Sequence record: OR413585.1
Reading direction: 5' to 3' (one strand)
Length of the DNA: 64,000 nucleotides
Shown here: piece by piece, positions 4,645-36,847 of the stretch
Position numbering within the stretch: the stretch's first letter is position 1
Layout of the letters: each line of letters starts with the position of its first letter
Program-made: the position numbers and the translations under genes
The notes under the pieces: model-generated
What the model was told of the DNA's origin: nothing
Seen by the model: the letters and a program-made list of their open reading frames with translations, nothing else
The model's database searches: none

Positions 4645-5442
4645 ATGTCTTTTACTTCAAAACAGAATCTGCTAAAACTCATCAACGAAGAGAATAAGAT
4701 AAGCCCACCGCTTACCTTTGACGATGTTGATATCGGACTGCCGGAGGTTGTGTCAGTAGACGGTCGTGATTCGGAGGTAGTCCTTACCTCAAAAATGCGC
4801 GGTGATGAAGGTACGCAAGTGATTGTGGACTACCATCGTCGTCCATTAGAGGACTACCTTAAAGGCGATGTTGCCTTTGGAGACGAGGACGTGCAAACCA
4901 CGCACGACTTACTCGCGGCGATTAACGAGCGTTTTAATCTGTCTATCTTACCTGAGGATATCGAAGATAACCCCATTGATGGACAGACGCACACAGTCGT
5001 TGCTGTTGAAACTTCCCACGAGTGGCGAAGTCAAGCGGTCATCGAGCTGAAACCTGCTACACCTCTGGCAGAAGTAGTAACCAATACAGAGTTGAGCGGT
5101 CTTCTGTACCCGGATCACCAGGACATCCAGTTGGGTCAGGCGTATATCTATTCGCGTGACATCGATTGTAGCCACATCTCTCGTTTCCTGAGCCTCTTAG
5201 CGGTCGGTATCGAGGTAGATGACACGGCGTTGGCAATCGAACTCAACAAATGTGTTCCTGAGATTTGGGTAGCTGAAGATACCCCATCCCCGTATAACCT
5301 GCGTGGTGCCACTGTCGTATTCGACGGCGTACCTGCAGACTTGCCGGGAGCAAATACGGCGTTCGCGAAAGTCGTGTCAGTGCAACTGACCGATAAATGT
5401 ACGAACTTCCAGGGCAGCCTCAACCTACACTTTAACAACTAG
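4645..5442 (+). CDS. putative virion structural protein, paralog family A
   Basis: Shares N-terminal ...Y(H/D)RR/L.., linker T.L.GL.YP and C-terminal L.LHFN motifs with neighbours. Confidence 0.75.
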   Translation: MSFTSKQNLLKLINEENKISPPLTFDDVDIGLPEVVSVDGRDSEVVLTSKMRGDEGTQVIVDYHRRPLEDYLKGDVAFGDEDVQTTHDLLAAINERFNLSILPEDIEDNPIDGQTHTVVAVETSHEWRSQAVIELKPATPLAEVVTNTELSGLLYPDHQDIQLGQAYIYSRDIDCSHISRFLSLLAVGIEVDDTALAIELNKCVPEIWVAEDTPSPYNLRGATVVFDGVPADLPGANTAFAKVVSVQLTDKCTNFQGSLNLHFNN

Positions 5443-5452
5443 GAGGGTATAG

Positions 5453-6295
5453 GTGTCTATTTACGATAAGCCCTCGAAAGAGATGTTGTTAGATGCTATT
5501 AACCGACAGAACGGATTAACGGCCAATCCACTCACATGGGAGCAGGTTGCAACTGGCTTCCCTGAGTCTGTCCAAACGCCTGGCGCTGACCGGAATACGC
5601 GTGTGCTCTTATACGGGTTGAACGGCAAGGGCTACAAAGGCAACGTTACGCTCGAATACGACCGTATCGAAATGGAAATTCTGTTCAGGAACGTAATACC
5701 GGTAGTCGTTGCCGACCCGGTAAATAAACTCTCTGAGTTGTTGCCGTTTCTGAATGCGAAATACGGCTTGTCTTTAGTTGCCGACGATATCGTTGACCAG
5801 TCAGTAAAAGATTTGGGAGAAAGCTGGTTAATCGATGTGACTATTAAGCCCGGTTGCTTGGCCTGGCAAGGTGGTTTCCGTTTACGCTTTGCGAAGTTCT
5901 TCCCGAACTTGGCGGATGTGGTGACGGATGTTGACCTCAGCGCAATTATCGCGCCGTTCGTGGTTGCTAGTAAACCACAGGCTGAGTATGTGGCGTATGG
6001 TTACGATTGGACTGAACTGCAAAAACAGTTCACTACCGATTGGGCTTACAACCGCGCAATCACCGCGGCGGATGTTGAATTGCTTAACGAAGTGGTGCCA
6101 TTAAAGTTTGCATATGTGACGGGGGCGACTGCGCAACCTGAACAAATTGCGCTTCAAGGTGCACGATATATGGGGATAACTTCAGTCACACCGAACGATA
6201 GTTACAACCCCGATTATCAGCGTGTGGCGATTATCAAGCTAGCTGCGGACAGCAACTACGCCGGTAATCTCATCCTTCACTATCTCCCGATATAA
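5453..6295 (+). CDS. putative virion structural protein, paralog family A
   Basis: RNTRV..GKGYKGNVTLEYDR motif; ends LILHYLPI. Confidence 0.75.
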   Translation: MSIYDKPSKEMLLDAINRQNGLTANPLTWEQVATGFPESVQTPGADRNTRVLLYGLNGKGYKGNVTLEYDRIEMEILFRNVIPVVVADPVNKLSELLPFLNAKYGLSLVADDIVDQSVKDLGESWLIDVTIKPGCLAWQGGFRLRFAKFFPNLADVVTDVDLSAIIAPFVVASKPQAEYVAYGYDWTELQKQFTTDWAYNRAITAADVELLNEVVPLKFAYVTGATAQPEQIALQGARYMGITSVTPNDSYNPDYQRVAIIKLAADSNYAGNLILHYLPI

Positions 6296-6305
6296 GGATT
6301 TTGAC

Positions 6306-7151
6306 ATGCCACTTTTAGCCACTGCTGAAAAGATTATTATCGCGGAGGTTAACGTCGAAAACAATCTCGATTTAAAAGTCGAAGATGTGGTTTTCGGCGT
6401 CCCTGCGATTCCGACGTCTGACGAAGACCTGGCAAAAGCCAATGGTCATAACGCGATGGTGCGCATTCAGGCATTGGCCACCGCTAATGCTATCGGTGCC
6501 ACTACCGTGTATTACGATCGTGTTGACTTCGCAGACATGTTTACTGACCCAGATGGGATTCAACCTCTACGTGTTCCTGCACGTCTCGACGCTGTTTACC
6601 AGATGCATGACGTGGTCGGGTTAATTAACCAGTATTACGGTCTCAGCCTTAAACCCGCAGATGTGGTGAATACCGAAATCGACAGGAAGACATGGCGTGT
6701 GGATCTGATTGCCACGCCCACTTCTTTAGGTTGGATAGGGCAACAACAGGTACAGCTGTTACCAGGCGATGCGTTGCTTCCTGCAAACTTCGAACCCTTA
6801 ACAGTGACACCTTACGAGTATCCGTATTTTAACATCAAGGTCGGTCAAGGTGCAGTTTATTCGTATCCCTGGCGCTTTGATAATTTCGCGGAGGAATTTC
6901 AACGACTAGGTGCTGCGATAACCGCAGAACGTCTGGCACAGATTCTCAAAACGGTCACCGGTGATAACTGGACAACGTACCGTAACCCAATCGACTTTAA
7001 CCTTCGTGAAGCCGTCGTCGTCTATAACGGGCGTAACAAAGCGGAATTACCAACCAACCCAGCAGTCGACAACGTGCTGATTGTGGAGCTGTCGTTGTAC
7101 TGTCTGAATTTTGGCGGGCGTTTGTATTTGCACTACAACGACCCTGATTAA
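6306..7151 (+). CDS. putative virion structural protein, paralog family A
   Basis: TTVYYDRV motif; ends LYLHYNDPD. Confidence 0.75.
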   Translation: MPLLATAEKIIIAEVNVENNLDLKVEDVVFGVPAIPTSDEDLAKANGHNAMVRIQALATANAIGATTVYYDRVDFADMFTDPDGIQPLRVPARLDAVYQMHDVVGLINQYYGLSLKPADVVNTEIDRKTWRVDLIATPTSLGWIGQQQVQLLPGDALLPANFEPLTVTPYEYPYFNIKVGQGAVYSYPWRFDNFAEEFQRLGAAITAERLAQILKTVTGDNWTTYRNPIDFNLREAVVVYNGRNKAELPTNPAVDNVLIVELSLYCLNFGGRLYLHYNDPD

Positions 7152-7172
7152 TCCTGAGTAAAGGAAGTAAGA

Positions 7173-8084
7173 ATGAAACCTTTAAACAAAACGTCCGATC
7201 AGCTGGTTCTGGATTTTATTAATGAGAAAAACCCAGACGCAGAACTGGAACTTTCTAAAATAACGCTCGGCACACCGACCCCTATTGTCGATGAAGGTGC
7301 CGATCGCAATACCAGCATGACCCTGACTGCGAAAAAGAACTCCGGGTACATCGGTACTCAGGACGTGACTTATAATCGCCTGGAAGGCAGTGCGCTGTTC
7401 CGTAATGTAACAGCATACCTCGACGTTAAACTGCCGAAAACCACCACCGACCTGCTGACGACCCTGAACACCCAATACGGATTGAAGCTGACCGAAGACG
7501 ATATCGTTCCGGCGGCTATTCCGGAAAATACCAACCCACCGCTGACTAACCCGAACGATCCGGACCCAGCACCGGTTGACCATGTCATTACCTTCAAAGA
7601 AGACTGCTACGCTTATCTGGGCAGCATCCCGGTTAAAATCGGTGCTAAGCCTCAGGTTGGTGAACGTCTGAGTCTGGTGGTAACACAAACCAAGCTCGAC
7701 GGCCTGGTTTACCCAGATGGTCCAAGCGAAGCGAAGGGTCAGGGCTACATCTACTCTTACGGTGTAGACTGCACAGCAATCGCAGCATTCCTGAAAGTAC
7801 AGGCGAAAGGTGTTATCGCTGGCGACTCTGCATTCCCGGTTGAGCTGAATAAAGTTGTGCCGGAACTGTGGGTTGCATCTGATGAGCCTGCGGATTATAA
7901 CCTGAAAGGTGCTAACGTGTTGTACGTTGGTTCTACTGCTGACGACGGCACTGCTTCAGGCGACGATCCTAAGAAACCGGTTGAAGGTGCAAACACTGCT
8001 TACAACCAGGTTCTGCTGCTGCAGCTGGATGACACTCTGTGCACCAACTTCCAGGGCGTCATGTACCTGCACTTTAATGCCTAA
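7173..8084 (+). CDS. putative virion structural protein, paralog family A
   Basis: RNTSM..SGYIGTQDVTYNRL; TKLDGLVYP; ends MYLHFNA; two Pro/Asp-rich insertions. Confidence 0.75.
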   Translation: MKPLNKTSDQLVLDFINEKNPDAELELSKITLGTPTPIVDEGADRNTSMTLTAKKNSGYIGTQDVTYNRLEGSALFRNVTAYLDVKLPKTTTDLLTTLNTQYGLKLTEDDIVPAAIPENTNPPLTNPNDPDPAPVDHVITFKEDCYAYLGSIPVKIGAKPQVGERLSLVVTQTKLDGLVYPDGPSEAKGQGYIYSYGVDCTAIAAFLKVQAKGVIAGDSAFPVELNKVVPELWVASDEPADYNLKGANVLYVGSTADDGTASGDDPKKPVEGANTAYNQVLLLQLDDTLCTNFQGVMYLHFNA

Positions 8085-8093
8085 TTAGGCCTC

Positions 8094-8137
8094 GCTGGGA
8101 GGAGGAAATCCTCCTCCTGGCTACTCCTTTCTTTTTT
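8094..8137 (+). terminator. intrinsic terminator
   Basis: GGAGGAGG-AAAT-CCTCCTCC stem then T-rich tail. Confidence 0.7.
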
Positions 8138-8993
8138 GGCCGAGGAGGCTATTATGGCTTTATATAGTCTGTCTCAGCGACAATATCTGTACGATGCGAT
8201 TAATGCCGAAAACCCGGATGCTGTTCTACCGATGGGTTTAGACAATGCTATCATCGGTACGCCGAAAGCAATCACACCGACAGCAAGCGGTGCCAATACT
8301 GAGATTATCATTCGTGGTCGTCAAGGTCGTGGCTATATCGGTCCTCAGACGTTCCGTTATAAGCGCTTGTCGCTGAACGACTTATTTAAGAACATGACAC
8401 CTCAGGTAACTGCACCGAATGCCTACGGTTGGCTGAACGTGGAGTCGAAACGTACTGCGTTTGCGCAGAACCTGAACGGTCGTTATGGGTTAAACCTGGT
8501 CGCAGATGATATCCCAGAACAATACGTTTATCTGAACGTAAACAACACGATGCGCATTAACGCTAGCTGTATCCAATACACTGGCAGCATCACCTTTATG
8601 TCTATCCGGGGTAAGAATAGCCTCGAAGACCTCGTGGTAAACGACATCTTGTCGGCTTTGAACCACCCTGCAGCAGCAAGCACTGGTAAGAAATACATGG
8701 GCTTCTTGACGTACGGGGAAGACTTTACTGATGAAGTGCAGGTTATGGCCTCGTTTAAGAACGGGCGAATGGACGTAGGAAGTAACTTTGATTTGGGTTA
8801 CACGTCCAATCTGATGGCCACATTGGTCGCACGTGGGGTACCGTCGTTTGATCCGACGAACTGCACAATTACCCGCTACAAAACGAGTGAGTTGGCGACC
8901 GCCAATAAAGCGTACGATAACGTATTGCTGATTACCGGCATTCAGAACGACCCGAAAGTAATCGGCGAGTGTATGTTGCACTACAACAACTAG
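8136..8993 (+). CDS. putative virion structural protein, paralog family A (likely start ATG 8154)
   Basis: GAGGAGG precedes ATG 8154; GRGYIGPQTFRYKRL; ends MLHYNN. Confidence 0.75.
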   Translation: MAEEAIMALYSLSQRQYLYDAINAENPDAVLPMGLDNAIIGTPKAITPTASGANTEIIIRGRQGRGYIGPQTFRYKRLSLNDLFKNMTPQVTAPNAYGWLNVESKRTAFAQNLNGRYGLNLVADDIPEQYVYLNVNNTMRINASCIQYTGSITFMSIRGKNSLEDLVVNDILSALNHPAAASTGKKYMGFLTYGEDFTDEVQVMASFKNGRMDVGSNFDLGYTSNLMATLVARGVPSFDPTNCTITRYKTSELATANKAYDNVLLITGIQNDPKVIGECMLHYNN

Positions 8994-9003
8994 GAATTAG
9001 CGA

Positions 9004-9891
9004 ATGGCTATTTATCAACCTTCTAAAGACGTCCTGTTGGCAGCAGTGAACGCACAGAACTCGCTTGCTGTTAAGATGACTGATATCATCTGGTCCACGC
9101 CAAAGGACATTCGTGGTACGGAGAAGGAAACGCTGACTAACCGTAACACGCAAATTAAAATTACGGCAGATGGAGTAACGGGCTCTACCTGGTCGGGTAA
9201 GAAAAATGTCTTCTACAACCGCATGAAAGTCGAAGACTTGTTAGTGCTGATTGGTGACACGTTGGCGATCGGCCCATCCAACGAAACCTTGTATGCGGCC
9301 ATTCCTGGACTGAACCAACGTTACGGTTTTGTTCTGGAAGAAGCTGACCTGCAGGACGCAGATATCGAATGGAACGGTGATAAGACTGAAGGAACTGTGC
9401 GTGTTGTTGCACATCCAGAGTCTATCGGTTGGGTTGGACAGGCGACATTTAAAGTCGTGAAAGGCGATGAGTCGTTAGTCTCTGCGGTCACCACTAACGT
9501 CCTGACCGGTCTGAAATACCCGAACGGTCAGATGGGTTCCGAAACCGTTACTGCGGTCATTGCAGAGGTTTATTCCTACCCGTACAACTTCACCAAATAC
9601 CGTGATGAGTTGCTGGCATACGTGCCGGGTATTCTGTCCGGACAGCCGTTGACGGATATGGTTAACCTGCTGAAAGATATTACGGGTACTGCATGGGTAG
9701 CGACCACCTCCGCTTCCTACGGTTTGGCGGGCGCGGAGGTTATCAGCGTTGGTCTGAATGACCCTGTTGCAATGCCGACAAACGCGAAGTACAAGTATGC
9801 GCTGGTGTTGAAACTGCCTGTTACCTGTACCACCATCGTCGGAACGTTGTATCTCCAGTTCAACGATCTGGACGATCCAAGCGAGGTATAA
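9004..9891 (+). CDS. putative virion structural protein, paralog family A
   Basis: RNTQI..KNVFYNRM; VLTGLKYP; ends LYLQFNDLD. Confidence 0.75.
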   Translation: MAIYQPSKDVLLAAVNAQNSLAVKMTDIIWSTPKDIRGTEKETLTNRNTQIKITADGVTGSTWSGKKNVFYNRMKVEDLLVLIGDTLAIGPSNETLYAAIPGLNQRYGFVLEEADLQDADIEWNGDKTEGTVRVVAHPESIGWVGQATFKVVKGDESLVSAVTTNVLTGLKYPNGQMGSETVTAVIAEVYSYPYNFTKYRDELLAYVPGILSGQPLTDMVNLLKDITGTAWVATTSASYGLAGAEVISVGLNDPVAMPTNAKYKYALVLKLPVTCTTIVGTLYLQFNDLDDPSEV

Positions 9892-10722
9892 TTGATGATC
9901 AACTATGCTAAGCCGTCAAACGAGTTGGTCTTTGACCTCATTAACCGGGATAACCCAAACCTACCTATTAAAGCGTCGCCGGCAAACTGCTACGTGGAGA
10001 AAGTGACACAGGTTCCCGTTAATGCAGCTTCCAACAACCGCAATACGTCGGCACGCTTGCGCGGTATTCAGGGTTCTGGATTTCGAGACGCAATCACCGT
10101 TTACTACGACCGTGTGAACTTAGCGCGGTTATTGCCGTGGGGGCCTTCCGTCCAGGCGCAGTTCGTCACGTTTGACGCACCCAACCTCCACTCAGCCTTT
10201 TCGGTGCTCTTGGATACCTACGGAGTAAACTTCTCCGCAATCGATATCCAAAACTACTCACTGTTTGGTGCCAATACCCCAAATTACACCAATACACAGA
10301 CCATTGCAGCGCTATCGACATCTCCGGCTTATATCGGTTCTGCGACGTTGCGTTATAACCGTGGTTTACCGGTACTAGACACTTCGGTGAAATCGGATGT
10401 CTTGAATGCGATTCAAGAGCCTATTTCACCGTCTCTCGGTAAGAAGTGTATTGATTTGTTGACGTACGGTATTGACTTTACCGCGTATAAAAACCTACTG
10501 ACAGTAGATGCTTCTGGCCTACCGCAGTGGGCTGGTTTGCGTAAGGTGTTGGATGACCTGGGTATTCCGAACTACGCGGGGCCACTGAACAGCAACACCG
10601 TTCAGGATGTGCCGACTTCCACCGCTCAGTTCGCTAACAAATCGTACGACCGCGTGGTTATCCAAACGGGTATCGATGAGGAAGGCGTGAAAGGCGTGGC
10701 GTACTACCACTATAACAGCTAA
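9892..10722 (+). CDS. putative virion structural protein, paralog family A
   Basis: RNTSARL..ITVYYDRVNL; ends AYYHYNS. Confidence 0.75.
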   Translation: MMINYAKPSNELVFDLINRDNPNLPIKASPANCYVEKVTQVPVNAASNNRNTSARLRGIQGSGFRDAITVYYDRVNLARLLPWGPSVQAQFVTFDAPNLHSAFSVLLDTYGVNFSAIDIQNYSLFGANTPNYTNTQTIAALSTSPAYIGSATLRYNRGLPVLDTSVKSDVLNAIQEPISPSLGKKCIDLLTYGIDFTAYKNLLTVDASGLPQWAGLRKVLDDLGIPNYAGPLNSNTVQDVPTSTAQFANKSYDRVVIQTGIDEEGVKGVAYYHYNS

Positions 10723-10727
10723 GTGTA

Positions 10728-10752
10728 GGGGCTCTTCGGAGCCCCATCTTTT
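10728..10752 (+). terminator. intrinsic terminator
   Basis: GGGGCTC-TTCG-GAGCCCC plus ATCTTTT. Confidence 0.75.
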
Positions 10753-10769
10753 GGCGATGCGGAGTCCCT

Positions 10770-12182
10770 ATGCTATTTTACTCGAAGGAGTCGGCACTGC
10801 TTGTATACGACCAAGTCAATCGGGATAACCCTGATTTAGTTATTAAGCTGACGCCGGCTATCGCTGCTTTAACCAGTGGCCCAACCTCAGTTACGTTAAA
10901 CCAACGTAACACCAAAGCTGTTTTCACCGGGTATCCAGGGACAGGTGTACAAGGTAATGTTACCGTGTACTACGACCGGATTAACCTGGCCACCTTATTT
11001 AATTTTGTGCCGACTGTGGCTATCAAAGACACAGTCTTAACGGTACGAGACGCGTTACCTGCAATAAACGACGCATTAGGACTTACATTAGTTGCTTCTG
11101 ATTTGCAGTCACCTGACGCAAGTTTACCTAAACCGAGCGTTTCGCCGCAGACGTTGAAATTAAATATCTCAGGTAATTGCCCTGCGTTTACAGGCAGCTT
11201 AACGATACGTTATACCGTCCCGAGCGGTGCAATTTACCCCGATTCTGGACCTGGCCCTAAAACGTTGCTGCAAGGTAACACTATTGCGGGTTATTTCGGA
11301 ACAACCACAACTGCAGAGTTGTTTACACACTCTCAACTTCTTAATGCCACTATATCGGCCGGTGCGTTACCACCGGTACATTCTGGTGCCGAAGGTTGGT
11401 ACAAGTTCTTTTACCAGGGTAGGGTTATTTACTTCCCGATTAGTCCTGTCGCTAGCTCCATCTCCTGGAATACGTTATATACAAACGGACTCGTTTACGG
11501 AACAGACGATAATGGTAAATACCCTGCAGCGACGCCCGTTAACCAGGGACGCATCATTAGCTTTACAGGCGCAGACAACAAAAGGTTTTACTTCCGCGTT
11601 CGTCTACCTAGTGCTGGGAAAGACCCATACGTCAGCGGCACCCCAACGGCCGCTGAGTTAGCAGGTAGTGAGTTTGAGATGTTCAACTTTCTGTATAATG
11701 GAACGTGGGACAAACCGATTAACAGTTACTGGACGCTGTTCTGTTTATTGAAAGATACACTGAAGACCAACGTCGCCCATCATCGCATGGCGACGTTGTC
11801 TGGAGCAAGTTGGACAAACTTAGAAAAATCATCGAGTGCGGGCAACTACTACTGGTTCCCGGTGCTGGAGTTGGTGGATAAGTCCACAGTTACCTTGGGT
11901 TTAGAAGATATCCACGGTACGGCAGATTACAGTCTCCAACCGTGCAGCGTGTCCGCAGAAAACACATTTAGTCTCAAGCCGTTAGTGCTCGGTAATCCGG
12001 ATACTACCGATTTCGAACCGGTAGTTGTTACTTCAGAAAACAGTTTCGCACTGCATCCGCCTGCTTTAATGCTGCCGAAGACAGTCGACTTCCAACCTAT
12101 TGCGGCTACCGCTGAAATGTATACGCCCCCTGACAAGACAACGTTAACGTCTCTTAACGGTGAACTGGACGGCTTTAAGTAG
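10770..12182 (+). CDS. putative virion structural protein, type B (family A N-domain + GPGP domain + NGELDGF tail)
   Basis: VYYDRINL N-domain; SGPGPKTL..G..AGYFG; ends LNGELDGFK. Confidence 0.75.
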   Translation: MLFYSKESALLVYDQVNRDNPDLVIKLTPAIAALTSGPTSVTLNQRNTKAVFTGYPGTGVQGNVTVYYDRINLATLFNFVPTVAIKDTVLTVRDALPAINDALGLTLVASDLQSPDASLPKPSVSPQTLKLNISGNCPAFTGSLTIRYTVPSGAIYPDSGPGPKTLLQGNTIAGYFGTTTTAELFTHSQLLNATISAGALPPVHSGAEGWYKFFYQGRVIYFPISPVASSISWNTLYTNGLVYGTDDNGKYPAATPVNQGRIISFTGADNKRFYFRVRLPSAGKDPYVSGTPTAAELAGSEFEMFNFLYNGTWDKPINSYWTLFCLLKDTLKTNVAHHRMATLSGASWTNLEKSSSAGNYYWFPVLELVDKSTVTLGLEDIHGTADYSLQPCSVSAENTFSLKPLVLGNPDTTDFEPVVVTSENSFALHPPALMLPKTVDFQPIAATAEMYTPPDKTTLTSLNGELDGFK

Positions 12183-12193
12183 AGGTATCATCT

Positions 12194-13192
12194 ATGTCTT
12201 TTACTTTGCGTTGGAAAAATCCAAACGTAATCTCTACGGTAGTAAAAATCTACCGTGATGTTAAAGATATCACACCAAGCGCTTTGCCTGAACCGATTGC
12301 AACGCTCTCAAACGGCGAGACAGAATGGCGTGATACCACCGCCACACCAGGCGCAACCTATTATTACCTTCTGACGGTAACCGCCAACGGTAAAACAGTG
12401 GCATCGTCTAGCCAGAAATATACCATTGAACTGAAGCGGGGAATCGGTCCAATGACTATTCTAAACGGTGACGACCGTTTAGGGTTTATGGGTGCGGTTC
12501 CTTACGACGAACAGTGGCTTCCGTCGCAAATGCCACCTGCATTTTTGGCGATGTTCCCTAACCTACTAACCGATCGTGTGGCGTTGTATAAATTTACCCG
12601 AAACGGGAAGATCTATTACATGCTATCTAGCACGTCGCAGTTCCCGAATACGCCTGTGGACTGGGCTTCCCTCTATCAAGCTGGTTTAGTCTACGGTACA
12701 GGCGATGCTGGCCCAGAGAACGGCCATGGAACGCTACCGGCCACTCCACAAGACGCTAAGATAGTCCACAGAGGGGATACGTACATTATGCGTCTTCCTC
12801 GCGGCCTGACGACGTCTAGCGAGTCTCCTGCGTATCCTTTCGTGGCTGACTACAATGGGAAAACCCACGATGAAATCGCTTCTCTAACCAACCCGTGCGA
12901 GTATAACGATTTACTTTACACGATGGTTAACGAGGTGCCGAAGAAACAACGTTGGGCTAACTGGGCAACAATCGGTTATACTTATCTGGGACAGGGTACT
13001 TTGGGAACCTTGGCACAGTATTTCGGCGGTGGTGTTCTCTGTATGGAACACGACACCGCGGAAGACCGTGTGCTCCATCGTGGTATTTTTAACAATGCCG
13101 GTGGAACACCCGTATCCACGATTCAGCGTATAAACTATTTATCACCCACCACGAAAGGGCGCTACTACCCTATCTTTGAACTGGTCGAGTAA
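12194..13192 (+). CDS. putative virion protein, type C1 (Fn3/Ig-like N-domain + GPGP-type domain)
   Basis: FTLRW..KIYRD..GETEWRD..TYYY resembles Fn3; GLVYGT motif shared with type B. Confidence 0.7.
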   Translation: MSFTLRWKNPNVISTVVKIYRDVKDITPSALPEPIATLSNGETEWRDTTATPGATYYYLLTVTANGKTVASSSQKYTIELKRGIGPMTILNGDDRLGFMGAVPYDEQWLPSQMPPAFLAMFPNLLTDRVALYKFTRNGKIYYMLSSTSQFPNTPVDWASLYQAGLVYGTGDAGPENGHGTLPATPQDAKIVHRGDTYIMRLPRGLTTSSESPAYPFVADYNGKTHDEIASLTNPCEYNDLLYTMVNEVPKKQRWANWATIGYTYLGQGTLGTLAQYFGGGVLCMEHDTAEDRVLHRGIFNNAGGTPVSTIQRINYLSPTTKGRYYPIFELVE

Positions 13193-13201
13193 GGGGCAGT
13201 C

Positions 13202-14125
13202 ATGACTATACGGTTAAGCTGGCCGTCCCAAGCCAGCAAAGGTCTTACCGCGATTGAAATCTACCGCAAGGAAGGATGGAACGCAACAATCGACGTTTAC
13301 AACCCAGGCACACCCCACGCCACCTTATCCGGTAGCGCGGTAGAGTTCGTAGATAATATCGATACCCTGACGAAGAATACAACTTATCGTTACTGGGTAG
13401 CTGCTGTGAAAGATAATGAACGACTTATCGGCAATCCGATTACGCAAGGGTTCTATCCGGACACTGGACCGGGGCCACAAACTATTTTGCGTGGCGATTG
13501 GGCGTCAGGCTATTTCGGTACGGTATCTAATACCGAGTTCTTTAATACTGCCGAGTTAAAACTCATGTTAACCGCGCAGCAGGGAAACATGTTTACTTAC
13601 GACCCTCAGGAATGGCACAAGTTTATTTTCCGTGGGCGAATTGTCTTCTTCCCAGCGACGATGCATTCGAAAAGCAACTCGGTACAAATGGCGTATCAGT
13701 ACGGCATGATGTACGGGACCGATGATGTCGGAAGTATTGTTCCGCAGGGAGCCACGGCGACTAAACAAGATTGTAAGGTCACGAAGGATGGTCGTACGTA
13801 CCGTATCCGATTACCTTACGCAGTCCCGTACGACGCGGCACTCTCAGGACAGGATTACAACAACGGTGAATGGCGAAACACAATGGGCCGTTTGTATCCT
13901 GTCGGTGCACAGTACGCAGCCCTCGGTCTTGGTGCGATTGACTCACTTGAAAGACAAGGCGCGACTGCGCAGCCGAATGAGTCAGGTGCCGCTGTATTAG
14001 CTCCTTTGTGGAGCAACAACATATTCGCTTATGCGTATGGCACCGTGCCTATGGGGATTAGTAACACCGCAGGTGTCGGGAACTCGGCCACGATATTCTT
14101 TGCTTTTGAATTAGTCTTACCGTAA
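13202..14125 (+). CDS. putative virion protein, type C2 (Fn3-like + GPGP domain)
   Basis: TGPGPQTILRGDWASGYFG; paralog of 16648..17550. Confidence 0.7.
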   Translation: MTIRLSWPSQASKGLTAIEIYRKEGWNATIDVYNPGTPHATLSGSAVEFVDNIDTLTKNTTYRYWVAAVKDNERLIGNPITQGFYPDTGPGPQTILRGDWASGYFGTVSNTEFFNTAELKLMLTAQQGNMFTYDPQEWHKFIFRGRIVFFPATMHSKSNSVQMAYQYGMMYGTDDVGSIVPQGATATKQDCKVTKDGRTYRIRLPYAVPYDAALSGQDYNNGEWRNTMGRLYPVGAQYAALGLGAIDSLERQGATAQPNESGAAVLAPLWSNNIFAYAYGTVPMGISNTAGVGNSATIFFAFELVLP

Positions 14126-14138
14126 TGGAGTAAATACC

Positions 14139-15557
14139 ATGGGGTTGTATACAGAACCTTCAATGGAACTGCTCTGCCAACAAATTGTGCGTGACAATCC
14201 CGGTTTAGCAGGAAAAATCACCCCTGACTCCATTGGGGTCAGGGGTGTTCCTGTTGCGAAAAACGTTAACGGACGAAACACTCAGATTACGTTGGTAGGA
14301 AAACCCGGTAAAGGATTTGCTGGGGAAATAACGGTATATTACGACCGGTTGAATCTGGCCAGTCTATTTAAGTCTGGCCCGAATATGGTGAGTATTCCAC
14401 GTAGCGCACAAACCCATGCGGAAGCGTTACCGGCGTTCAATGAATTGAACGGGTTGAACTTAACCGCGAGTGACATCACCAGTCCAAACGTTGCATTAAT
14501 GAAATACGCTACGCCGGAAACTGTAACTCTGACGGCGCACGCTAACTCCTTGTGTTATACCGGGTCATGCAAGATGACCTATGTTTACGAACCGATTGCG
14601 ATGTATCCGAAGTCGGGTCCTGGGCCAAAAGGATTAATGGCCGGTAATGAGTTATACGGATTCTTTGGGCTGGTAAGCGCGGAAGAGTTATTCACATCTG
14701 ATGAAATGGTGTATGCCCTCTATAACGGCACCAACTGGCCTAACCGCTACGCTATCAAGTGGCTCAAATTCTTTCTGAATGGGGCGGTAGTGTTTGTTCC
14801 GACCCGTGCGATTTGCAACGTTACCTGGGCAGACCTGTACAACAAGGGTGCAATATTTGATTCCGGAGACGCAGGACCTCGCCCGAAGTCGACTTACACA
14901 CCTGTCGATGTTGAACAGTTGAAATACATGGTAAAACGGGATGATGAAGGAACGCATTATTTCAGAATGTCTATCCCGTATTACACCGAGAACGCCGCCG
15001 CGCCTGATTGGAGTAAACCGCCGTCAATCACCTCTATCCTGTCACTGACCAGCAAATTGGGGTCGGTGAACGTATATGGGGAGTGGGGAACTCTTAGCAC
15101 GACTGATGCTAACTTCCTGGATTACGTGTGGTTACGACACCAGTTCGGTGCCGACCAAGCGTATTACCAGTCTATCAGTGGGAGCTATCGTTCATACACC
15201 TACATCTACACCTCTTCTGGCTTTTGGCCAATCTTGGAGATGTTTGATGTTGCCAATGAACCTGTGCCGTTGATTGACGAAGGTGCAGAATTAACATGGG
15301 CACCGTCCGTGGTTACTCTGACGGACATCGACCAAAACGAATCGCTTCGTGTGGTGCCGATTACGGAAACCTCCGCTACAGCGAATCCACGTCCTCTGCT
15401 TGCCACGACGGACAATGATGAACGTGCATATTCCGTCGCGGTAACAGGCATGGCTACCGTTAAGATTAGACCGATTATTCTCACGACTGACCAAATCGCC
15501 CAACCTTCAAAAATTACTCTGGGCGATACTAACGGTGAGTTGGATGGATTCCAATAA
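14139..15557 (+). CDS. putative virion structural protein, type B
   Basis: Paralog of 10770..12182; SGPGPKGL; ends TNGELDGFQ. Confidence 0.75.
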   Translation: MGLYTEPSMELLCQQIVRDNPGLAGKITPDSIGVRGVPVAKNVNGRNTQITLVGKPGKGFAGEITVYYDRLNLASLFKSGPNMVSIPRSAQTHAEALPAFNELNGLNLTASDITSPNVALMKYATPETVTLTAHANSLCYTGSCKMTYVYEPIAMYPKSGPGPKGLMAGNELYGFFGLVSAEELFTSDEMVYALYNGTNWPNRYAIKWLKFFLNGAVVFVPTRAICNVTWADLYNKGAIFDSGDAGPRPKSTYTPVDVEQLKYMVKRDDEGTHYFRMSIPYYTENAAAPDWSKPPSITSILSLTSKLGSVNVYGEWGTLSTTDANFLDYVWLRHQFGADQAYYQSISGSYRSYTYIYTSSGFWPILEMFDVANEPVPLIDEGAELTWAPSVVTLTDIDQNESLRVVPITETSATANPRPLLATTDNDERAYSVAVTGMATVKIRPIILTTDQIAQPSKITLGDTNGELDGFQ

Positions 15558-15569
15558 GAGGTAACGACA

Positions 15570-16644
15570 ATGGCTTTTACAATTCGTTGGACGAACAATA
15601 ACCCTGGGGCTTCGACCGTGAAGCTGTACCGCGACACCAAACCTCTGGAGCGTACGGCATTACCTGAACCTCTGGCAACGTTCACTAACGGGGAAACTGA
15701 GTATACTGACCGAACAGCGATACTGGGGACAACGTATTACTACATGACCACCGTGACAGTGGGAAGCCGGACACTGTTCAGTCCGCAGAAATCAATTCTG
15801 ATTCAGAACCGTCGCGGTATCGGCATCGTGGCTCCACAGTACGGTGATGACCGCTTTGCGTATTACGGGTATGTGGCGTACGGTGAATTGCCTAGCGCGG
15901 CTGATTATCCGCCAGGGTTTGTGGCCCTTTCTGGATTTGACCCAACTGTTAAGCCGGGCTTGATTAAGTTCCAGCTAGACGGTAAAATTCTGTATCTGTT
16001 TAGTGGTCTTCGTGTGAACGGCAACACGCTGTATAGCCGTGATGCGATTTATAACGCGGGGCTTGTGTACGGTGTTGATGGATTTGGTCCTGATAACGGA
16101 CGTGGTGATTTGGTGGGTGTTGACCAGAGTGGGTTGTTTGAATGGCAAGGCGACACCTGATGGATTTGGTCCTGATAACGGACGTGGTGATTTGGTGGGT
16201 GTTGACCAGAGTGGGTTGTTTGAATGGCAAGGCGACACCTATCGGATGCGATTGCTGCGCGGTTTAACCGACGGGGACGAACCGACAGTAATGACGTTGG
16301 ATGAATCGTTACGAAACGCAGACCATGATGACTTGGAATATGGTCGCTGCGAATATAACGACTTTGTTTATCCGTTCGGAGATTGTATCCCTAACAAACA
16401 AATGCTCCCTAACTGGACTAATATCAGTCCAGCGTCCATTTATGGGAGCGGTAGCGCTTACCAAGGCAAAGGTTTCTTGTGCCAAGAACGTGATCCTGAA
16501 TCGGGATTAGTTCTGGTTCGTGGGTCTGCGCCTATCGATTCAAGCATAGTCAATACGTCGAAACGTAACCTCTCCCAAGTTACGTTAATTGACAGTGCTG
16601 AGAAGGTCGGTTTGTACGCATTCGTTATCGAGTTAGTGGAGTAA
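15570..16644 (+). pseudogene. type C1 virion gene split by an 82-bp tandem duplication (or an assembly artefact)
   Basis: 15570..16160 and the 3' part of 16039..16644 together match 12194..13192; removing 82 bp gives a 330-aa ORF. Confidence 0.8.
16077..16240 (+). repeat. perfect 82-bp direct tandem duplication
   Basis: GATGGATTTGGTCC...GGCGACACCT at 16077-16158 and 16159-16240. Confidence 0.95.
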
Positions 16645-16647
16645 AAC

Positions 16648-17550
16648 ATGTCGATTATCTTAAACTGGAAACAACAGCCAGGTCAGACTTTAGATTCCAT
16701 TGAAATCTATCGTTACGTTAACCCTAGACAAAGTGTTAGCCCAGTAGCACCGGGGGAACCCATTGTAACACTACCAGGTAACACAACGACGTACGAGGAC
16801 AAGACCACCGAAGCGTATAAAACGTATCAATATCGCATCGTGGCGGTAAAGGGCACTGAAAAGGTTATGGGGCTGCCGATTGTACAGGGCGACTTTCCAA
16901 TGACAGGACCCGGCCCACAGGAACTTATTCGTGGCGACTGGCATCGTGGCTACTTTGGCACACTGACAAACGAAGAATTTATTCTTAACCATGCCGAGCT
17001 GAATGGTTTAATTGGCTTTAATGCCTGGAACCAAGCTCCAACATTGTTCCATAAATTCGTTTTCAAAGGACGCATTCTGTTCATTCCTGACACGGTGACC
17101 TGTTTAGGGACGTCGTGGAACGAACAATACCAGCAAGGTCTGGCCTGGGGAACAGATGACTACGGTTTCCCGCCACGGGGCGTCGCTACCACTAACCAGC
17201 GTCGGACATTTAATAAAGACGGTTACGAGTATGTGGTACGTTTGCCTCGACTCGGAGACTACAGTTATGGGCACAGCACCTACCTAAACAGCGGTGGTTA
17301 TTTTCAAGACGGCGAGTGGCACAACACGTTCGCAAGCTTGTTCCGGTACGCGGGCGTCGTAAGACGTTTTGGCGACTTACCGATGCGCTCCGGCGGTAGT
17401 CCAACCGATTCAACCGCAACATTGTTTGCCAACGGTTATGACAACGCCACCCCGTGGTATTATCGCGCCACTTATCCAGACTCACCATCGTACATCTCTT
17501 CGAACAGTAGCGCGTCGGTAGTCCACGTTATCGAATTGGTTCTTAGCTAA
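16648..17550 (+). CDS. putative virion protein, type C2
   Basis: TGPGPQELIRGDWHRGYFG; Fn3-like N-terminus. Confidence 0.7.
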   Translation: MSIILNWKQQPGQTLDSIEIYRYVNPRQSVSPVAPGEPIVTLPGNTTTYEDKTTEAYKTYQYRIVAVKGTEKVMGLPIVQGDFPMTGPGPQELIRGDWHRGYFGTLTNEEFILNHAELNGLIGFNAWNQAPTLFHKFVFKGRILFIPDTVTCLGTSWNEQYQQGLAWGTDDYGFPPRGVATTNQRRTFNKDGYEYVVRLPRLGDYSYGHSTYLNSGGYFQDGEWHNTFASLFRYAGVVRRFGDLPMRSGGSPTDSTATLFANGYDNATPWYYRATYPDSPSYISSNSSASVVHVIELVLS

Positions 17551-17561: not shown

Positions 17562-17837
17562 ATGGGGTTTTACTCATCCACTGCACTTGAGCTATTGTGT
17601 CGGCTCATTCAGCGGGATAATCCCCAACACGCAGGTCGAATCAGCGCAGATTCAATTGGGGAGTGTACGATCTATTACGATGAGTCGTTAAACAGTAACA
17701 CAGTGGCCGATGTTACCACCGCATCCAATTCGTTCGCTAATAAAGCGTACGGCCGCGTGGTTATCCAAACTGACGTCGAAGCAGCTGGAGTTAAAGGGAT
17801 AGCGTACTTCACCATAACAGCTAAAAATAGGCCCTGA
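17562..17837 (+). pseudogene. internally deleted chimeric remnant of array genes
   Basis: N-terminus resembles 14139; C-terminus resembles the end of 9892; a 1-nt shift near the end reads into the terminator. Confidence 0.7.
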
Positions 17838-17868: not shown

Positions 17869-19188
17869 ATGATCAACTATAACAAACCTGTCATGCAGCT
17901 GGTTTGGGATCAGATTAATCGTGATAACCCGCAGCTCAAGAAACCACTCAACGCAACCAACGTGGCGTTATTACAAGGTCCTTTAACCAATGCCTTGCGC
18001 GATGGCCGCAACAGCCGTATAGTGGTAAACGGATTACAGGGTGGTGGTTACAGCGGTAAGATGGACATCTACTACGACCGCTTAAACCTTTCGCAGTATT
18101 TTAAAGGCGTCAGCGTACCGGTTAAAGTACCATATCGGGCGACGTCCTACCGCGACATCATCGACCGGATTTCCGCAGCTTGTGGGTTGGTGCTTACTGC
18201 TGACGATTTAACGTATCCCGACAGCCAGTTTGCAATGATCACCGTGGCAACGGGCGATCGGACGGTGGCGATTAAATCGGATAACCCCGCATTCACGGGT
18301 CACATTCCTATTAGCTTTATTCGTGAAGAGCCCAGCTTTGCCGACTTGTACCACACCACCGAAACCGGAGCTTGGGAACCCATGGATGTTTACAGCACGG
18401 TCTATCGACTCGACTGGAGCATGTACACCCAACAGATAATCAATATCCCAATGGGTACCCCGTTGCGACTAAACAGTAACTCGTACATGAACCAGTTCAT
18501 CGCTGCGCTGTCGGCATGGTCGGGCATCCCGTTCACTATCGGCAACGCTGCTACTGATAACCCGTATGACCTCTATGGGTACGTCGCTACACGCAATAAC
18601 AACCCAGGCTTAGACCCTGATATGCGTGGGGAGTACAATTACTGCGTGAAGTTGACGCCACCTGAGGATATGGGTAATCTCCGCCGTCCGTTTTTCTTGC
18701 ACTTTGGTCCGAAAAATAACGTGGCCTATTTAGCGCAGGAAGAGGACGTCGAACGTTATGCGCGTTACATGGGGTTCCGGGAAACCAGCTCAAATACGAT
18801 GAGCATCACGTTATATCAAAACGAGTACGTGTTGACCCGGGCGGAAGCGCCTGAAACGAGGGATGATTTATCGGGTTCCCCGTATGGCCTTCAATACTGT
18901 ACCGGGAGTATTCGACGGCTGATGCAACACGCGTTTCCGACCGAAGAGATGTTCCAAGAAAGTATTGCTAACCGGCGGCGGGTACTGTACCACACTGCTT
19001 ACACCACCACGACATCAGCTGTTACTTACCCGGGACTAAACCGTAACGGATACCAATCCAAACAAGTGTCGAGCAATTACTCGAATTACTGTAACTATTT
19101 CATCTATTACGACCCAAGCAAAGGTGGCTATATGGTCTACAGTCCATATAGCAAAACCGCCCCGGTCCCTTGGTATCCACCGCTATAG
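17869..19188 (+). CDS. putative virion protein (family A N-domain, distinct C-domain)
   Basis: RNSRIVV..MDIYYDRLNL; C-terminal YSPYSKTAP..W shared with 19203. Confidence 0.7.
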   Translation: MINYNKPVMQLVWDQINRDNPQLKKPLNATNVALLQGPLTNALRDGRNSRIVVNGLQGGGYSGKMDIYYDRLNLSQYFKGVSVPVKVPYRATSYRDIIDRISAACGLVLTADDLTYPDSQFAMITVATGDRTVAIKSDNPAFTGHIPISFIREEPSFADLYHTTETGAWEPMDVYSTVYRLDWSMYTQQIINIPMGTPLRLNSNSYMNQFIAALSAWSGIPFTIGNAATDNPYDLYGYVATRNNNPGLDPDMRGEYNYCVKLTPPEDMGNLRRPFFLHFGPKNNVAYLAQEEDVERYARYMGFRETSSNTMSITLYQNEYVLTRAEAPETRDDLSGSPYGLQYCTGSIRRLMQHAFPTEEMFQESIANRRRVLYHTAYTTTTSAVTYPGLNRNGYQSKQVSSNYSNYCNYFIYYDPSKGGYMVYSPYSKTAPVPWYPPL

Positions 19189-19202: not shown

Positions 19203-21380
19203 ATGTCCTACACTCCTGATTTAGTGGCGACCGTGATTCGGTCGCTCAACCGTAAAAACGCGGTCGCCAAAGCAGTAGACCCCGCTAACGTACGCCTGGT
19301 GTCCGTGGCGCATCGTGACGAAAAAACCCTAGACGTCACACTGACAGGGGGTCCGGGGTATTCGAATTACGGTCAAATTACGGCCCAGGTCACGAAGCAA
19401 AATATTGCTGATTATTTCGCTAAGGTTAAGTTGGATGCCATTCCCACTTGTGCATCCATTCACGAACTGTTGCCGCATTTAGACACTTTACTGGGGATTA
19501 CCTTTTTAACCGACGACTTTGAAGACCTGCCTATCACTTGGACAAACAATGCTGCGCGTATCACATTCCAGGCGAAACAGACAAGTCTTATCTGGTACGG
19601 CAGCCAAACGCTAGATGTGATAAACGGTGACGTGGATATCAACACTGTCTACACTGTTACCAATATCATTCTCACGCTAAAGGCTGCGAATAAACAGCAG
19701 TGGATTAACTTCTACTCTAATGCAACCAAACGGATCGTGGATCTTGATAAAGTCGATGTCAGCGCCCCGATGTCCCCGGAGGATATAGGCCAAACCTCTG
19801 CGTATAACAGCGTCGTAGCTTTGACCGCTAGACCGGGGAGCGGGATGTTTGGAACGAAGTATGTGTTCTTCTCACGCAACAAACTCGAGACATATGCAGG
19901 CAAAACCACATACGTCCCGGATGATTTCACCGGTAGCCTGCACGATGCTCTGGCCATCGAGACACTCGGCATTCGGAGCGTTTTTGATGTAAACGAAATT
20001 GCTCCTGTAGAGAACCTGGTAGGCGAGTGGCCGAGACAAGTGCAATTGACACCCGTAGAGGGTTCGTACAAAGTCATGGGCAGCGCCACGTTGAATGTGG
20101 CACGCTATCAAGATAACGAGCAAACCCTTAACCTGAACTACACAACTACGTCGCAACTTTCGGACAGCTACTGGGCCACAACGTTGACCAACCATGCGGC
20201 GTGCGGGCGTTTGTTTGTTAACGTGACCGTAGATGCGGGGGCTTTCGTTTATCGCGACAGCAACCTGAAACCGACGTTCGTTATCGACGAATTGCCGCAA
20301 ATTGGCGAGGTGGTTTGGAACTTCGTTAACCGGGGAACCATTCTTGGTCGTGGTGGTTCGGGTATGGTCTACTCTATGCCTGCGAACACATCAGCGGACG
20401 GAGCTGACGCAATCCACATTAGCGATACCTTCCGTGGCAAAGTCACCATCGAAAACTACGGCACCATCGCCGGAGGTGGGGGTGGGGGCGACTACTATGC
20501 GTTTAGCACCACCAAGATCGGTGGAGCTGGTGGTGCGCCTCTCGGGCCAGGCGCGGCGGTGCCCAGCGGCACCAATAACCGTAACGGCTTAGCTGGGTCC
20601 CGTGACAAAGGCGGTGCTACCCAGTTAGTCGTCGCACAATTTACCGGCTACCAGAGTCGCTACTATGGCGGTCCGGGTGGGGATTGGGGCCAGCCGGGAC
20701 GATATACGGCGTTCGAGCAATGGAACACCCCGGCTACCGGCTCGCCGGTCTATGTCTACGGTCGTGAAGACGGGATGTCATGGACTCGCCCTGGGATGGC
20801 AGGCGAAGCCGTCGGTGGGAATAAAAGTATCGTCAACTGGGTATCCGTCGGAACGGTGAAACCGAATGTCACCGACGAGTACCAAGAGTTCCTCGACTAC
20901 CTCGCAGATTTAGATGCCAACCGATTGGCCAGTGCGGATGGGATAGATAAAGTCACCGACCCAACCAAACCTGTAGTTGTGGAGTTCTTAGGTACTATTA
21001 TTTCAGGTACGCTGTTCAAAAAGCAAAACATACCCGGCGGTTTGGTGGGAACACCATACGGCGATGCTGTAGCCAATTTACCGGCCACCACATTGTTTGG
21101 TATCATGGCACACTGTGTATCGGAGTTTGATATTGTGCACGACACTTGGCGTTACAACCGTGCGGTAATGTTCACCCTAAAACCCGCGCCTACCGGGGCG
21201 ATTGGCCTCGCTGTGGAACGCAACCGGGTGAGATCGGCTACCAGTAGTACACCGGTGGAGAGGTTCTATGTCGATCGCTTCGTGTATTACGATGCGTATC
21301 TCGGTAAAATGATGGAATGTAATCCGTATACCAAATCTGCCCCTAAAACGTGGGTGCGGCCAACGATACCGTTATCGTAA
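19203..21380 (+). CDS. putative receptor-binding virion protein with a T-even gp38-like glycine-rich adhesin domain
   Basis: Two family A-like N-domains, then GTILGRGG..GTIAGGGGGG..GGAGGAPLG..GGPGGDWG..AGEAVGG..W motifs. Confidence 0.65.
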   Translation: MSYTPDLVATVIRSLNRKNAVAKAVDPANVRLVSVAHRDEKTLDVTLTGGPGYSNYGQITAQVTKQNIADYFAKVKLDAIPTCASIHELLPHLDTLLGITFLTDDFEDLPITWTNNAARITFQAKQTSLIWYGSQTLDVINGDVDINTVYTVTNIILTLKAANKQQWINFYSNATKRIVDLDKVDVSAPMSPEDIGQTSAYNSVVALTARPGSGMFGTKYVFFSRNKLETYAGKTTYVPDDFTGSLHDALAIETLGIRSVFDVNEIAPVENLVGEWPRQVQLTPVEGSYKVMGSATLNVARYQDNEQTLNLNYTTTSQLSDSYWATTLTNHAACGRLFVNVTVDAGAFVYRDSNLKPTFVIDELPQIGEVVWNFVNRGTILGRGGSGMVYSMPANTSADGADAIHISDTFRGKVTIENYGTIAGGGGGGDYYAFSTTKIGGAGGAPLGPGAAVPSGTNNRNGLAGSRDKGGATQLVVAQFTGYQSRYYGGPGGDWGQPGRYTAFEQWNTPATGSPVYVYGREDGMSWTRPGMAGEAVGGNKSIVNWVSVGTVKPNVTDEYQEFLDYLADLDANRLASADGIDKVTDPTKPVVVEFLGTIISGTLFKKQNIPGGLVGTPYGDAVANLPATTLFGIMAHCVSEFDIVHDTWRYNRAVMFTLKPAPTGAIGLAVERNRVRSATSSTPVERFYVDRFVYYDAYLGKMMECNPYTKSAPKTWVRPTIPLS

Positions 21381-21424
21381 TTTAACGAGGAACTTGACGG
21401 GTTTAAAGCCTGAAGATAATCCAT

Positions 21425-22364: not shown

Positions 22365-23006
22365 ATGGAAGCACTTAAGTATACGTTGTTAGAGAAGCCG
22401 TGGTTTATCCTCACGGATGATTTCCATTTCGAGTTTACGTTGCGCAGCCTCTATCGTGAACAGACCGGAATGGATGCGATGGTAGCATTAGCAGGTGTGC
22501 ATCCGGATACCCCGTTATGGGTAACGGTACCGAGAGGATTTGTGACGGACCTGGCAAGCATTCCAGAAGCGTTACGTCCTATCCTGCATCCGGATGGGCC
22601 TTGGGCTGCTGCCGCTTGTGTGCATGATTTGTTTTACCAGAAACGTTCATCGGTAGGCTTTTACCCTGACACTGTCGAAGGTAATCTATCTCGTGCATGT
22701 GACAAAACATTCGCTGATCTGATGTTCTTACGTATCATGGAGGCATTAGGCGTTGACACCTTTATTCGTAAGTCCTTCTACCATGCCGTTCACGAGTTTG
22801 GTTGGCCGTCCTATGTAGACGATAACTCTAAGGTGGTTTATAGCCGGCCGGTAGAAAAGACGTTGTCCTATAATCGCAACTACCTGTTCTTTAGAACGTC
22901 GCGTACGTTAGCGATTCCTGAACACGAACGTGTTGACATTACTAATGGGCAACCGGTAAACGTGCAGTATTTGAATATCAAACGTGCGTTCCTGACTACC
23001 CCTTAA
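22365..23006 (+). CDS. DUF1353-family protein
   Basis: VTVPRGFVTDLASIP...AAACVHDLFY signature. Confidence 0.8.
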   Translation: MEALKYTLLEKPWFILTDDFHFEFTLRSLYREQTGMDAMVALAGVHPDTPLWVTVPRGFVTDLASIPEALRPILHPDGPWAAAACVHDLFYQKRSSVGFYPDTVEGNLSRACDKTFADLMFLRIMEALGVDTFIRKSFYHAVHEFGWPSYVDDNSKVVYSRPVEKTLSYNRNYLFFRTSRTLAIPEHERVDITNGQPVNVQYLNIKRAFLTTP

Positions 23007-24271: not shown

Positions 24272-24799
24272 ATGGCAGTCATCTCTGCAAAAGACCAACT
24301 CGTCGCGCTGTTTAATGCTGCAAACAGCGGACTGTCTAGTCCGTTAACTACTGCTGACGTTACATTCGGCGCTGTTGCTGACTATTCACCAGCAGATTCT
24401 GGAGACACTCGCAACTCCAAACTCACCATCACTGCCACCGCGGAATCCGCTAACTTTACGGGCGAGAAAGAGCTGCACTATACCCGCCTCGATTCATTGA
24501 ACATCATCGGTGCGAAAGCAGTTACCGCTGACCAGGCAGAATGGGATACCGATGAAGAAGTGCTTGCTTTTGTCAACGCAGATCTAATTGCCGCCGGTAA
24601 AACGGAAGATGCGTTTGCGTTGTCTGAACTCACCATTTCACGCGAAGACGGCGACAGTGGTGAGAAAATCATCACTGTTATGGTGAAAGAAGGCCACATT
24701 AAATACCAGCCTGCCAGCCTTGCAGTTTATACTGTAACGCAGCCAATCGTTAAAACTGACCTGAGCACCACCAACGGTGAACTGGACGGATTCGTTTAA
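24272..24799 (+). CDS. stand-alone family A N-domain virion protein with NGELDGF tail
   Basis: TRNSKLTITA..FTGEKELHYTRLD; ends TTNGELDGFV; AAGGA RBS. Confidence 0.75.
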   Translation: MAVISAKDQLVALFNAANSGLSSPLTTADVTFGAVADYSPADSGDTRNSKLTITATAESANFTGEKELHYTRLDSLNIIGAKAVTADQAEWDTDEEVLAFVNADLIAAGKTEDAFALSELTISREDGDSGEKIITVMVKEGHIKYQPASLAVYTVTQPIVKTDLSTTNGELDGFV

Positions 24800-36753: not shown

Positions 36754-36785
36754 TGCAAACACTCCTAATCTGTAATAAAACGGAG

Positions 36786-36847
36786 ACCGCCCTCCCAATA
36801 ACGGAAGGGCGGTTTACCTACGGACTACCCGCCCGTAGGCAGTCCGT
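36786..36847 (-). promoter_or_regulatory. two tandem hairpins between tail genes (terminator or processing site)
   Basis: ACGGACTGCC/GGTAGTCCGT and ACCGCCCTTCC/GGGAGGGCGGT stems on the minus strand. Confidence 0.5.

Follow-up and report, generated by a model that had tools for sequence, protein, structure and literature searches.

The window analysed here is the whole of a 64,000-nucleotide stretch of record OR413585.1, from a Seoulvirus (SPN3US-like) Salmonella jumbo phage, and the gene in question is its ortholog of SPN3US_0155, which encodes the virion protein gp155. This gene lies within an array of DUF7941 genes and is followed by an endolysin gene, with no gp37-like gene adjoining it. 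The encoded protein consists of two N-terminal DUF7941 modules (N-modules), a GP38 domain without the gp37-attachment domain, and a C-terminal domain (C-domain) held in common with gp154 (Table 1). The present work computed the homology and predicted fold of this protein, its architecture and pattern of conservation, and the synteny of its gene.

The open reading frame (ORF) is 100% identical to its counterpart in Salmonella phage SPLA5c, 97.4% identical to positions 133169-135346 of SPN3US, and 97-98.5% identical to those of about 30 further Seoulvirus genomes isolated from Salmonella, E. coli and Proteus; PHROG 19313 covers it over its full length (1290 bits). The SPN3US record annotates gp155 as a "hypothetical protein". 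The SPFM19 record names the ortholog "Phage tail fiber adhesin Gp38", which looks like an automatic, Pfam-derived label, and the paper on the SPFM phages mentions no adhesin. The GP38 content of gp155 is flagged automatically in databases and discussed in no paper that we found.

Table 1. Features of the gp155 gene, its neighbours and related loci. Positions refer to the window unless a contig is named; residues are those of the gp155 ortholog.
Feature	Position	Strand	Description
gp155 ortholog gene	19203..21380	+	725-residue virion protein, 2178 bases; SPN3US_0155 counterpart; from ORF list and translation
First DUF7941 N-module	19233..19664	+	residues 11-154; Pfam PF25613, E 3e-23, profile 12-166
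Second, more diverged DUF7941 N-module	19734..20102	+	residues 178-300; PF25613 stretch in SPN3US frame, profile 23-152, E 2.5e-7
GP38-type domain: beta part and predicted polyglycine sandwich	20118..20873	+	residues 306-557 by structure, 373-553 by Pfam
Glycine motif 1, GTILGRGGSG	20334..20363	+	residues 378-387; aligns with S16 gp38 IYGRGGTG
Glycine motif 2, NYGTIAGGGGGG	20454..20489	+	residues 418-429; highest conservation among orthologs (0.85)
Glycine motif 3, GGAGGAPLG	20520..20546	+	residues 440-448
Glycine motif 4, GGPGGDWGQPG	20667..20699	+	residues 489-499
Glycine motif 5, GMAGEAVGG	20793..20819	+	residues 531-539; followed by W546
C-terminal domain	20871..21377	+	residues 557-725; common with gp154-like proteins; PHROG 6409, BLASTP, alignment A4
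TAA stop, in-frame untranslated remnant FNEELDGFKA, then stop	21378..21413	+	remnant of DUF7941 linker/docking motif
NGELDGF C-terminal motifs	12159, 15534, 24776		
gp154 ortholog, 439 residues	17869..19188	+	one DUF7941 N-module and C-domain common with gp155; conserved upstream partner gene
DUF7941 paralog array and associated genes	4645..17550	+	SPN3US "paralog family B", gp138-153
gp154-like/gp155-like gene pairs	L010:3203-10208; L011:6666-10178; L018 (CR5) 7676-11169		

The GP38 domain and its setting in gp155

Glycine makes up 24% of residues 377-540, compared to 10% of the whole protein. The Pfam GP38 profile (PF05268) matches residues 373-553 with an E-value of 6.6e-18 and 65.8 bits over profile positions 61-214 of 218, well above the curated gathering cut-off of 25 bits. 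The SPN3US copy scores 70.1 bits, and gp155 is the only GP38 match among the SPN3US proteins. A further hit is to PHROG 2056 ("tail fiber protein; host specificity"), at 2e-19, and a phmmer search of the PDB sequences returned only the gp38 adhesins of phages PP01 (9V85) and S16 (6F45 chain D), at E-values of 0.004-0.007. Motifs 1-4 align one-to-one with S16 and PP01 gp38 in pairwise comparisons, and all five are contained in a multiple alignment (A6). The original prediction, made from the sequence alone, had named five glycine motifs in a fixed order and proposed homology to T2/S16-type gp38; all five occur in the translation where it had placed them and in the order given, and the profile and structure-database matches bear out the homology, well outside what chance would produce. 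We regard the identification of the GP38 domain as secure. Identity to gp38 is only 32-39% in alignment A6 and 27% in the structure-based comparison.

A full-length model of gp155 was built with AlphaFold2 after 12 of the long proteins had been aligned (A2), with a mean predicted local distance difference test score (pLDDT) of 85. In a Foldseek search of the PDB this model returned PP01 gp38 (E 2e-10), S16 gp38 (E 3e-8) and the phiKZ outer-baseplate chain 9xqd_0 (E 5e-5), with no further match below 1e-2. Aligned with VIA-align, it superposes on S16 gp38 (6f45_D) with a Z-score of 24.2 over 215 residues, and its residues 306-557 superpose on PP01 gp38 (9v85_A) with a Z-score of 23.2 and a root-mean-square deviation of 2.5 Å over 206 residues. 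The glycine segments of the model are neither helix nor strand according to DSSP. The domain is therefore predicted to adopt a polyglycine-II sandwich fold. A different fold together with a missing gp38 profile match would have spoken against the original prediction; both points were examined, and neither occurred.

The segments flanking the GP38 domain tie gp155 to its neighbours. Two PF25613 stretches are seen in all gp155 orthologs, and residues 1-140 of the model match phiKZ chain 9xqd_0 with a Z-score of 9.9 over 132 residues; this chain is the N-domain of gp127 according to a preprint on phage Goslar (bioRxiv 10.64898/2026.04.21.720040). PF25613 covers only the N-terminal half of DUF7941 in gp155, and the C-terminal globular DUF7941 module was not found there. 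In SPN3US as a whole there are 17 matches to the family. At the other end, the last ~110 residues of gp155 match the C-terminus of the gp154 ortholog (18790-19185; BLASTP E 8e-9), and both belong to PHROG 6409. The proposed insertion of the adhesin domain, with domains of the array family on one side and a C-domain also present in the adjacent gene on the other, is thus supported at both ends. Two candidate identities for the C-domain did not hold up. As a diverged DUF7941 C-module it reached an hhalign probability of 0.2% against the canonical paralogs, and its resemblance to an LCCL domain (1jbi, Z-score 8.6 in the full-length model) dropped to a Z-score of 3.7 when the domain was modelled on its own (pLDDT 74). 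The best overall structure match of this stand-alone model has a Z-score of only 4.8.

Residue 725 is directly followed by a TAA stop codon, beyond which ten codons in the same frame would still encode the linker motif. In orthologs from outside Seoulvirus the protein runs on into a short terminal tail bearing GEL(D/P)(G/A)F, which is translated in P0005, P0006, P0016, P0019-21 and P0025. Three other DUF7941 proteins encoded in the window (10770-12182, 14139-15557 and 24272-24799) terminate in the same motif, as NGELDGF plus one residue. In alignment A7, on which the identity of the gp155 terminal motif with the canonical linker rests, NGELDGF of the 175-residue gp160 homolog among them is matched to the conserved linker motif found after the N-module of canonical DUF7941 paralogs. 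The order of these sequence elements suggests that the cargo of cargo-bearing DUF7941 members sits between the N-module and the docking linker. The translated Seoulvirus gp155 is devoid of this linker; such a subunit could be recruited but could not itself recruit, and would therefore act as a filament terminator.

Distribution and variation among relatives

A single-sequence search with the 231-residue domain against 1.84 billion cluster representatives found only 16 proteins. Nine of them have 706-755 residues with GP38 at the same position, and another three are short gp38 proteins of the T-even type. Near relatives only came up in word-based protein searches, whether the query was the isolated domain or that region within the whole of gp155, and a tblastn query of phage genomes with the domain gave Seoulvirus matches only. 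A search for related loci led from gp155 to SPN3US only and from S16 gp38 to three loci. Full-length orthologs with ~40% identity are present in Cronobacter phage CR5 (CR5_144), where the GP38 domain is present, and in Erwinia phage Phobos; the same architecture also occurs in about nine metagenomic lineages. No GP38 was found in phiKZ. The N-terminal domain Gp38_N (PF21721) has no match in the gp155 ortholog or its own orthologs, and is carried by the short T-even-type proteins P0026 and P0027. In a tree of the GP38 domain, 11 of 12 jumbo-phage domains fall on one side of a branch supported at 96/96, with the long-branch sequences P0024 and P0028 crossing over.

Across 12 orthologs, all of this architecture, the mean column conservation is 0.54-0.85 in the five motif blocks and 0.30-0.45 in the four loops. 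The invariant positions of the domain are almost all motif glycines, and insertions and deletions fall in the loops. Loop variation among relatives, as originally predicted, is therefore seen across lineages, while within Seoulvirus the loops are almost invariant and the domain changes no faster than the remainder of gp155. An apparent case of loop divergence, the domain of E. coli phage Lh1B (91.8% identity), was rejected on account of ambiguous bases in its record (OK428535). Sequences of low quality or frameshifted appearance were left out, namely P0007-P0011, P0014, P0015 and those SPFM records in which the gene is broken into 31-34 separate matches. The latter (LR535901, LR535903-08, LR535911-13 and LR535917, about one third of the SPFM records) encode fragmentary proteins, which points to many insertion and deletion errors in these assemblies.

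A gp154-like gene of ~440 codons lies directly upstream of the gp155-like gene in every genome examined. In contig L010 the unit is present twice, encoding proteins of 436 and 706 residues and of 439 and 735 residues. Because the two proteins share the C-domain and a similar low abundance in the virion, gp154 and gp155 may act as a complex. In metagenomic contig L011, a GP38-bearing gene is followed by a gene for a 602-residue Phage_tail_beta (PF27114) protein in place of the endolysin gene (L011:10321-12129).

Position on the virion and proposed role

Virion presence, filament formation, the position of phiKZ gp127 and flagellum dependence are taken from published work. According to the Goslar preprint, DUF7941 is specific to chimalliviruses, and purified Goslar gp22, the one member for which filament formation has been demonstrated, forms long filaments (bioRxiv 10.64898/2026.04.21.720040). 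In an AlphaFold prediction from the same source, the linker of one protomer docks on the N-domain of the next. The preprint also describes three Goslar members with carbohydrate-binding, hydrolase or leucine-rich-repeat (LRR) cargo and proposes a "DUF7941 fibre cloud" with its anchorage at the peripheral baseplate. In the structural atlas of phiKZ, the N-domain of gp127 is modelled as part of the outer baseplate (PMC13250141). Neither source mentions SPN3US gp155 or a gp38-like domain, nor does any paper found beyond the proteomic studies cited below, and SPN3US itself is not mentioned in the Goslar preprint.

We consider it probable that gp155 is a DUF7941 filament protein with a built-in GP38 polyglycine receptor-binding domain, acting as an adhesin at the filament tip. 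That it enters filaments, sits at their tip and binds a receptor is what we infer, as is the site of anchoring, whether baseplate or head. The two N-terminal modules would attach gp155 to head-to-tail DUF7941 filaments on the chimallivirus virion and so stand in for the domain by which T-even gp38 docks on gp37. The loops of the GP38 domain, variable and set on a conserved glycine scaffold, would face a structure of the host surface. The stop codon in Seoulvirus removes a C-terminal linker motif that would otherwise recruit the next subunit, so that gp155 could join a filament but not extend it and would sit at its end, probably accompanied by the product of its conserved neighbour, gp154. Our rough arithmetic from published spectral counts, set against the 12-copy portal, gives ~6-8 copies of gp155 per virion, similar to gp154, and this low number fits one copy per filament. 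An adhesin function of gp155 can be inferred on good grounds; a specificity for porins is unsupported.

Several observations weigh against this proposal. Within Seoulvirus the GP38 domain is 97.8-99.6% identical whether the phage was isolated on Salmonella, E. coli or Proteus; being nearly invariant across three host genera, it does not behave as a fast-evolving switch of host range or specificity. Known targets of gp38 are outer-membrane proteins, unlike the flagellum. The reported receptor of SPN3US is the flagellum (PMC11428620). Moreover, tailless heads of mutant 255(am107), purified on CsCl, contain gp155 at a normalised ratio of 0.89 to the virion, where it was detected too, and the protein was assigned to the "Head" (PMC5694885 supplement; PMC10052503 Table S2). 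The whole DUF7941 family occurs in these tailless heads at nearly the virion level, which conflicts with a filament anchored at the baseplate. The original prediction had described a host-recognition module shared between unrelated phage groups: the shared gp38 domain stands, while recognition of the host can only be proposed and recognition of a porin finds no support, in view of the missing Gp38_N, the location in tailless heads, the flagellar receptor and the identity of at least 97.8% within the genus.

Where, then, do DUF7941 filaments attach? In SPN3US, gps 83, 138-154, 161 and 237 were grouped as "paralog family B" and termed head proteins, since they are retained in a tailless mutant (Ali et al. 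2017, PMC5694885); gp155 is not listed in this family despite carrying the domain, and the abundant members are annotated "Head ejection?". The contradiction between this "head" assignment from proteomics and the peripheral baseplate filament of the 2026 structures, which includes the cryo-electron microscopy of phiKZ, appears not to have been noticed so far. It could be explained by a different attachment site in Seoulvirus, by long filaments that co-purify with heads, or by an internal location of the family. The internal option is the least likely of the three, because gp155 is not processed by the protease and because, in two further phages, members of the family make up structures on the outside of the virion.

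These options lead to other readings of gp155. It could be a component of an external fibre borne on the head or neck, with DUF7941 filaments on the capsid or collar and GP38 catching the flagellum or the cell surface. This differs from the tip adhesin proposed above in the anchoring site only, and we hold it to be conceivable, if somewhat doubtful. Two independent tailless mutants keep gp155 and all of family B in purified heads, and the reported flagellum dependence of SPN3US would suit such an arrangement; the Caulobacter phage phiCbK has head filaments that bind the flagellum. On the other hand, the gp155 N-module matches the very phiKZ chain that is modelled in the outer baseplate, self-assembling filaments could be carried along with heads during purification, and a low-resolution study of the SPN3US capsid reports no head-attached fibres. 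Taken one step further, filaments in the SPN3US-like clade may be head- or neck-borne and end in a gp154/gp155 cap whose GP38 domain catches the flagellum or a conserved surface protein. We rate this more specific version as rather unlikely; if true, it would be a head-side filament-tip adhesin in a contractile-tailed phage, with a T-even adhesin grafted onto a chimallivirus-specific polymer.

That gp155 is an internal head or ejection protein, with a polyglycine domain that has a role outside adsorption, would agree with its "Head" assignment and with the "Head ejection?" annotation of abundant family B members. We find this improbable, as gp155 is absent from the set processed by the prohead protease and was detected at 78.3 kDa, the gel position of the unprocessed protein (PMC5694885 supplementary table; PMC10052503 Table S2). 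In addition, long filaments are made by a purified Goslar DUF7941 protein, gp127 of phiKZ lies on the outside of the baseplate, and a conserved scaffold with variable loops is the pattern of an outward-facing binding surface. Least of all do we expect gp155 to be a classical T-even-style adhesin that caps conventional tail fibres (the homologs of SPN3US gp168-170). The GP38 fold, the label in the SPFM19 record and the large fibre genes on the minus strand (31570-36798), only ~10 kb from the gp155 gene, would speak for such a cap; yet gp155 has no Gp38_N as the short T-even-type proteins do, no gp37-like gene adjoins its gene, and it is kept in tailless heads, where gp168-170 drop more than 10-fold.

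Set beside Straboviridae gp38 (T2, S16 and PP01; PF05268, 6F45 chain D, 9V85) and DUF7941 cargo proteins, gp155 presents a known adhesin domain in a new architecture, carried by a filament family that was described only recently. With gp38 it has in common the five glycine motifs in the same order, a predicted polyglycine sandwich that superposes with Z-scores of 23-24, and a conserved glycine scaffold with variable, indel-rich loops. Unlike gp38, gp155 belongs to a phage of the Chimalliviridae, lacks the Gp38_N domain that binds the tip of the gp37 fibre, and carries its adhesin domain in the middle of a 725-residue chain, whereas gp38 is a stand-alone protein of 25-30 kDa encoded beside gene 37; in S16 it directly follows gp37, and the gp155 gene is not so placed. 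Gp38 is located on the tail, while published proteomics puts gp155 with the heads. As in Goslar gp86, gp92 and gp161 (bioRxiv 10.64898/2026.04.21.720040), an N-terminal DUF7941 module is combined with a domain suggestive of host recognition, among many paralogs. Those proteins bear carbohydrate-binding, glycoside-hydrolase or LRR domains; GP38 is a type of cargo not described in that preprint, and gp155 further differs in its two N-modules, in the C-domain common with a partner gene, and in the truncation of the linker motif in Seoulvirus. The N-module fold of gp155 matches phiKZ gp127, which is of the same Pfam family and, unlike gp155, is a plain 290-residue DUF7941 protein without cargo.

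SPN3US is the genetic model of the nucleus-forming jumbo phages that infect enterobacteria. For this model, gp155 is a candidate receptor-binding protein with a well-predicted structure, and its solved homologs can guide mutagenesis. It links the structures of gp38 polyglycine adhesins with the "DUF7941 fibre cloud" proposal of 2026, two bodies of work that do not cite each other, and adds a type of cargo to the DUF7941 fibre model. The linker at the extreme C-terminus of cargo-bearing members could provide a simple rule for telling extending subunits of a filament from terminating ones. The adhesin module is a clear example of one that Straboviridae and Chimalliviridae infecting the same hosts have in common. 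For the question of where DUF7941 filaments attach, the tailless heads of SPN3US and the baseplate of phiKZ give contradictory answers.

Other observations in the array

Compared to SPN3US 126142-130353, the window lacks ~3.3 kb at 15387-16644 (SPN3US 126901-130235), corresponding to one of the three copies of a three-gene repeat in the array. At the junction, the gp149 and gp152 paralogs are fused into a hybrid, which reads as two overlapping ORFs (15570-16160 and 16039-16644) and is probably frameshifted. Between the gp153 and gp154 orthologs, an ORF of 91 residues (17562-17837, plus strand) has a match to DUF7941 (E 7e-7) that is confined to the final ~45 positions of the profile, and looks like the remnant of the C-module of a DUF7941 paralog; about 130 bases of this region (17645-17775) are absent from SPN3US.

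Downstream of the gp155 gene, the homolog of SPN3US gp157 (22365-23006, plus strand), which RefSeq names "tail assembly chaperone", is a DUF1353 protein (E 2e-17). The SPN3US proteomics classes gp157 as non-virion, and its homolog could help to assemble the proteins encoded next to it.

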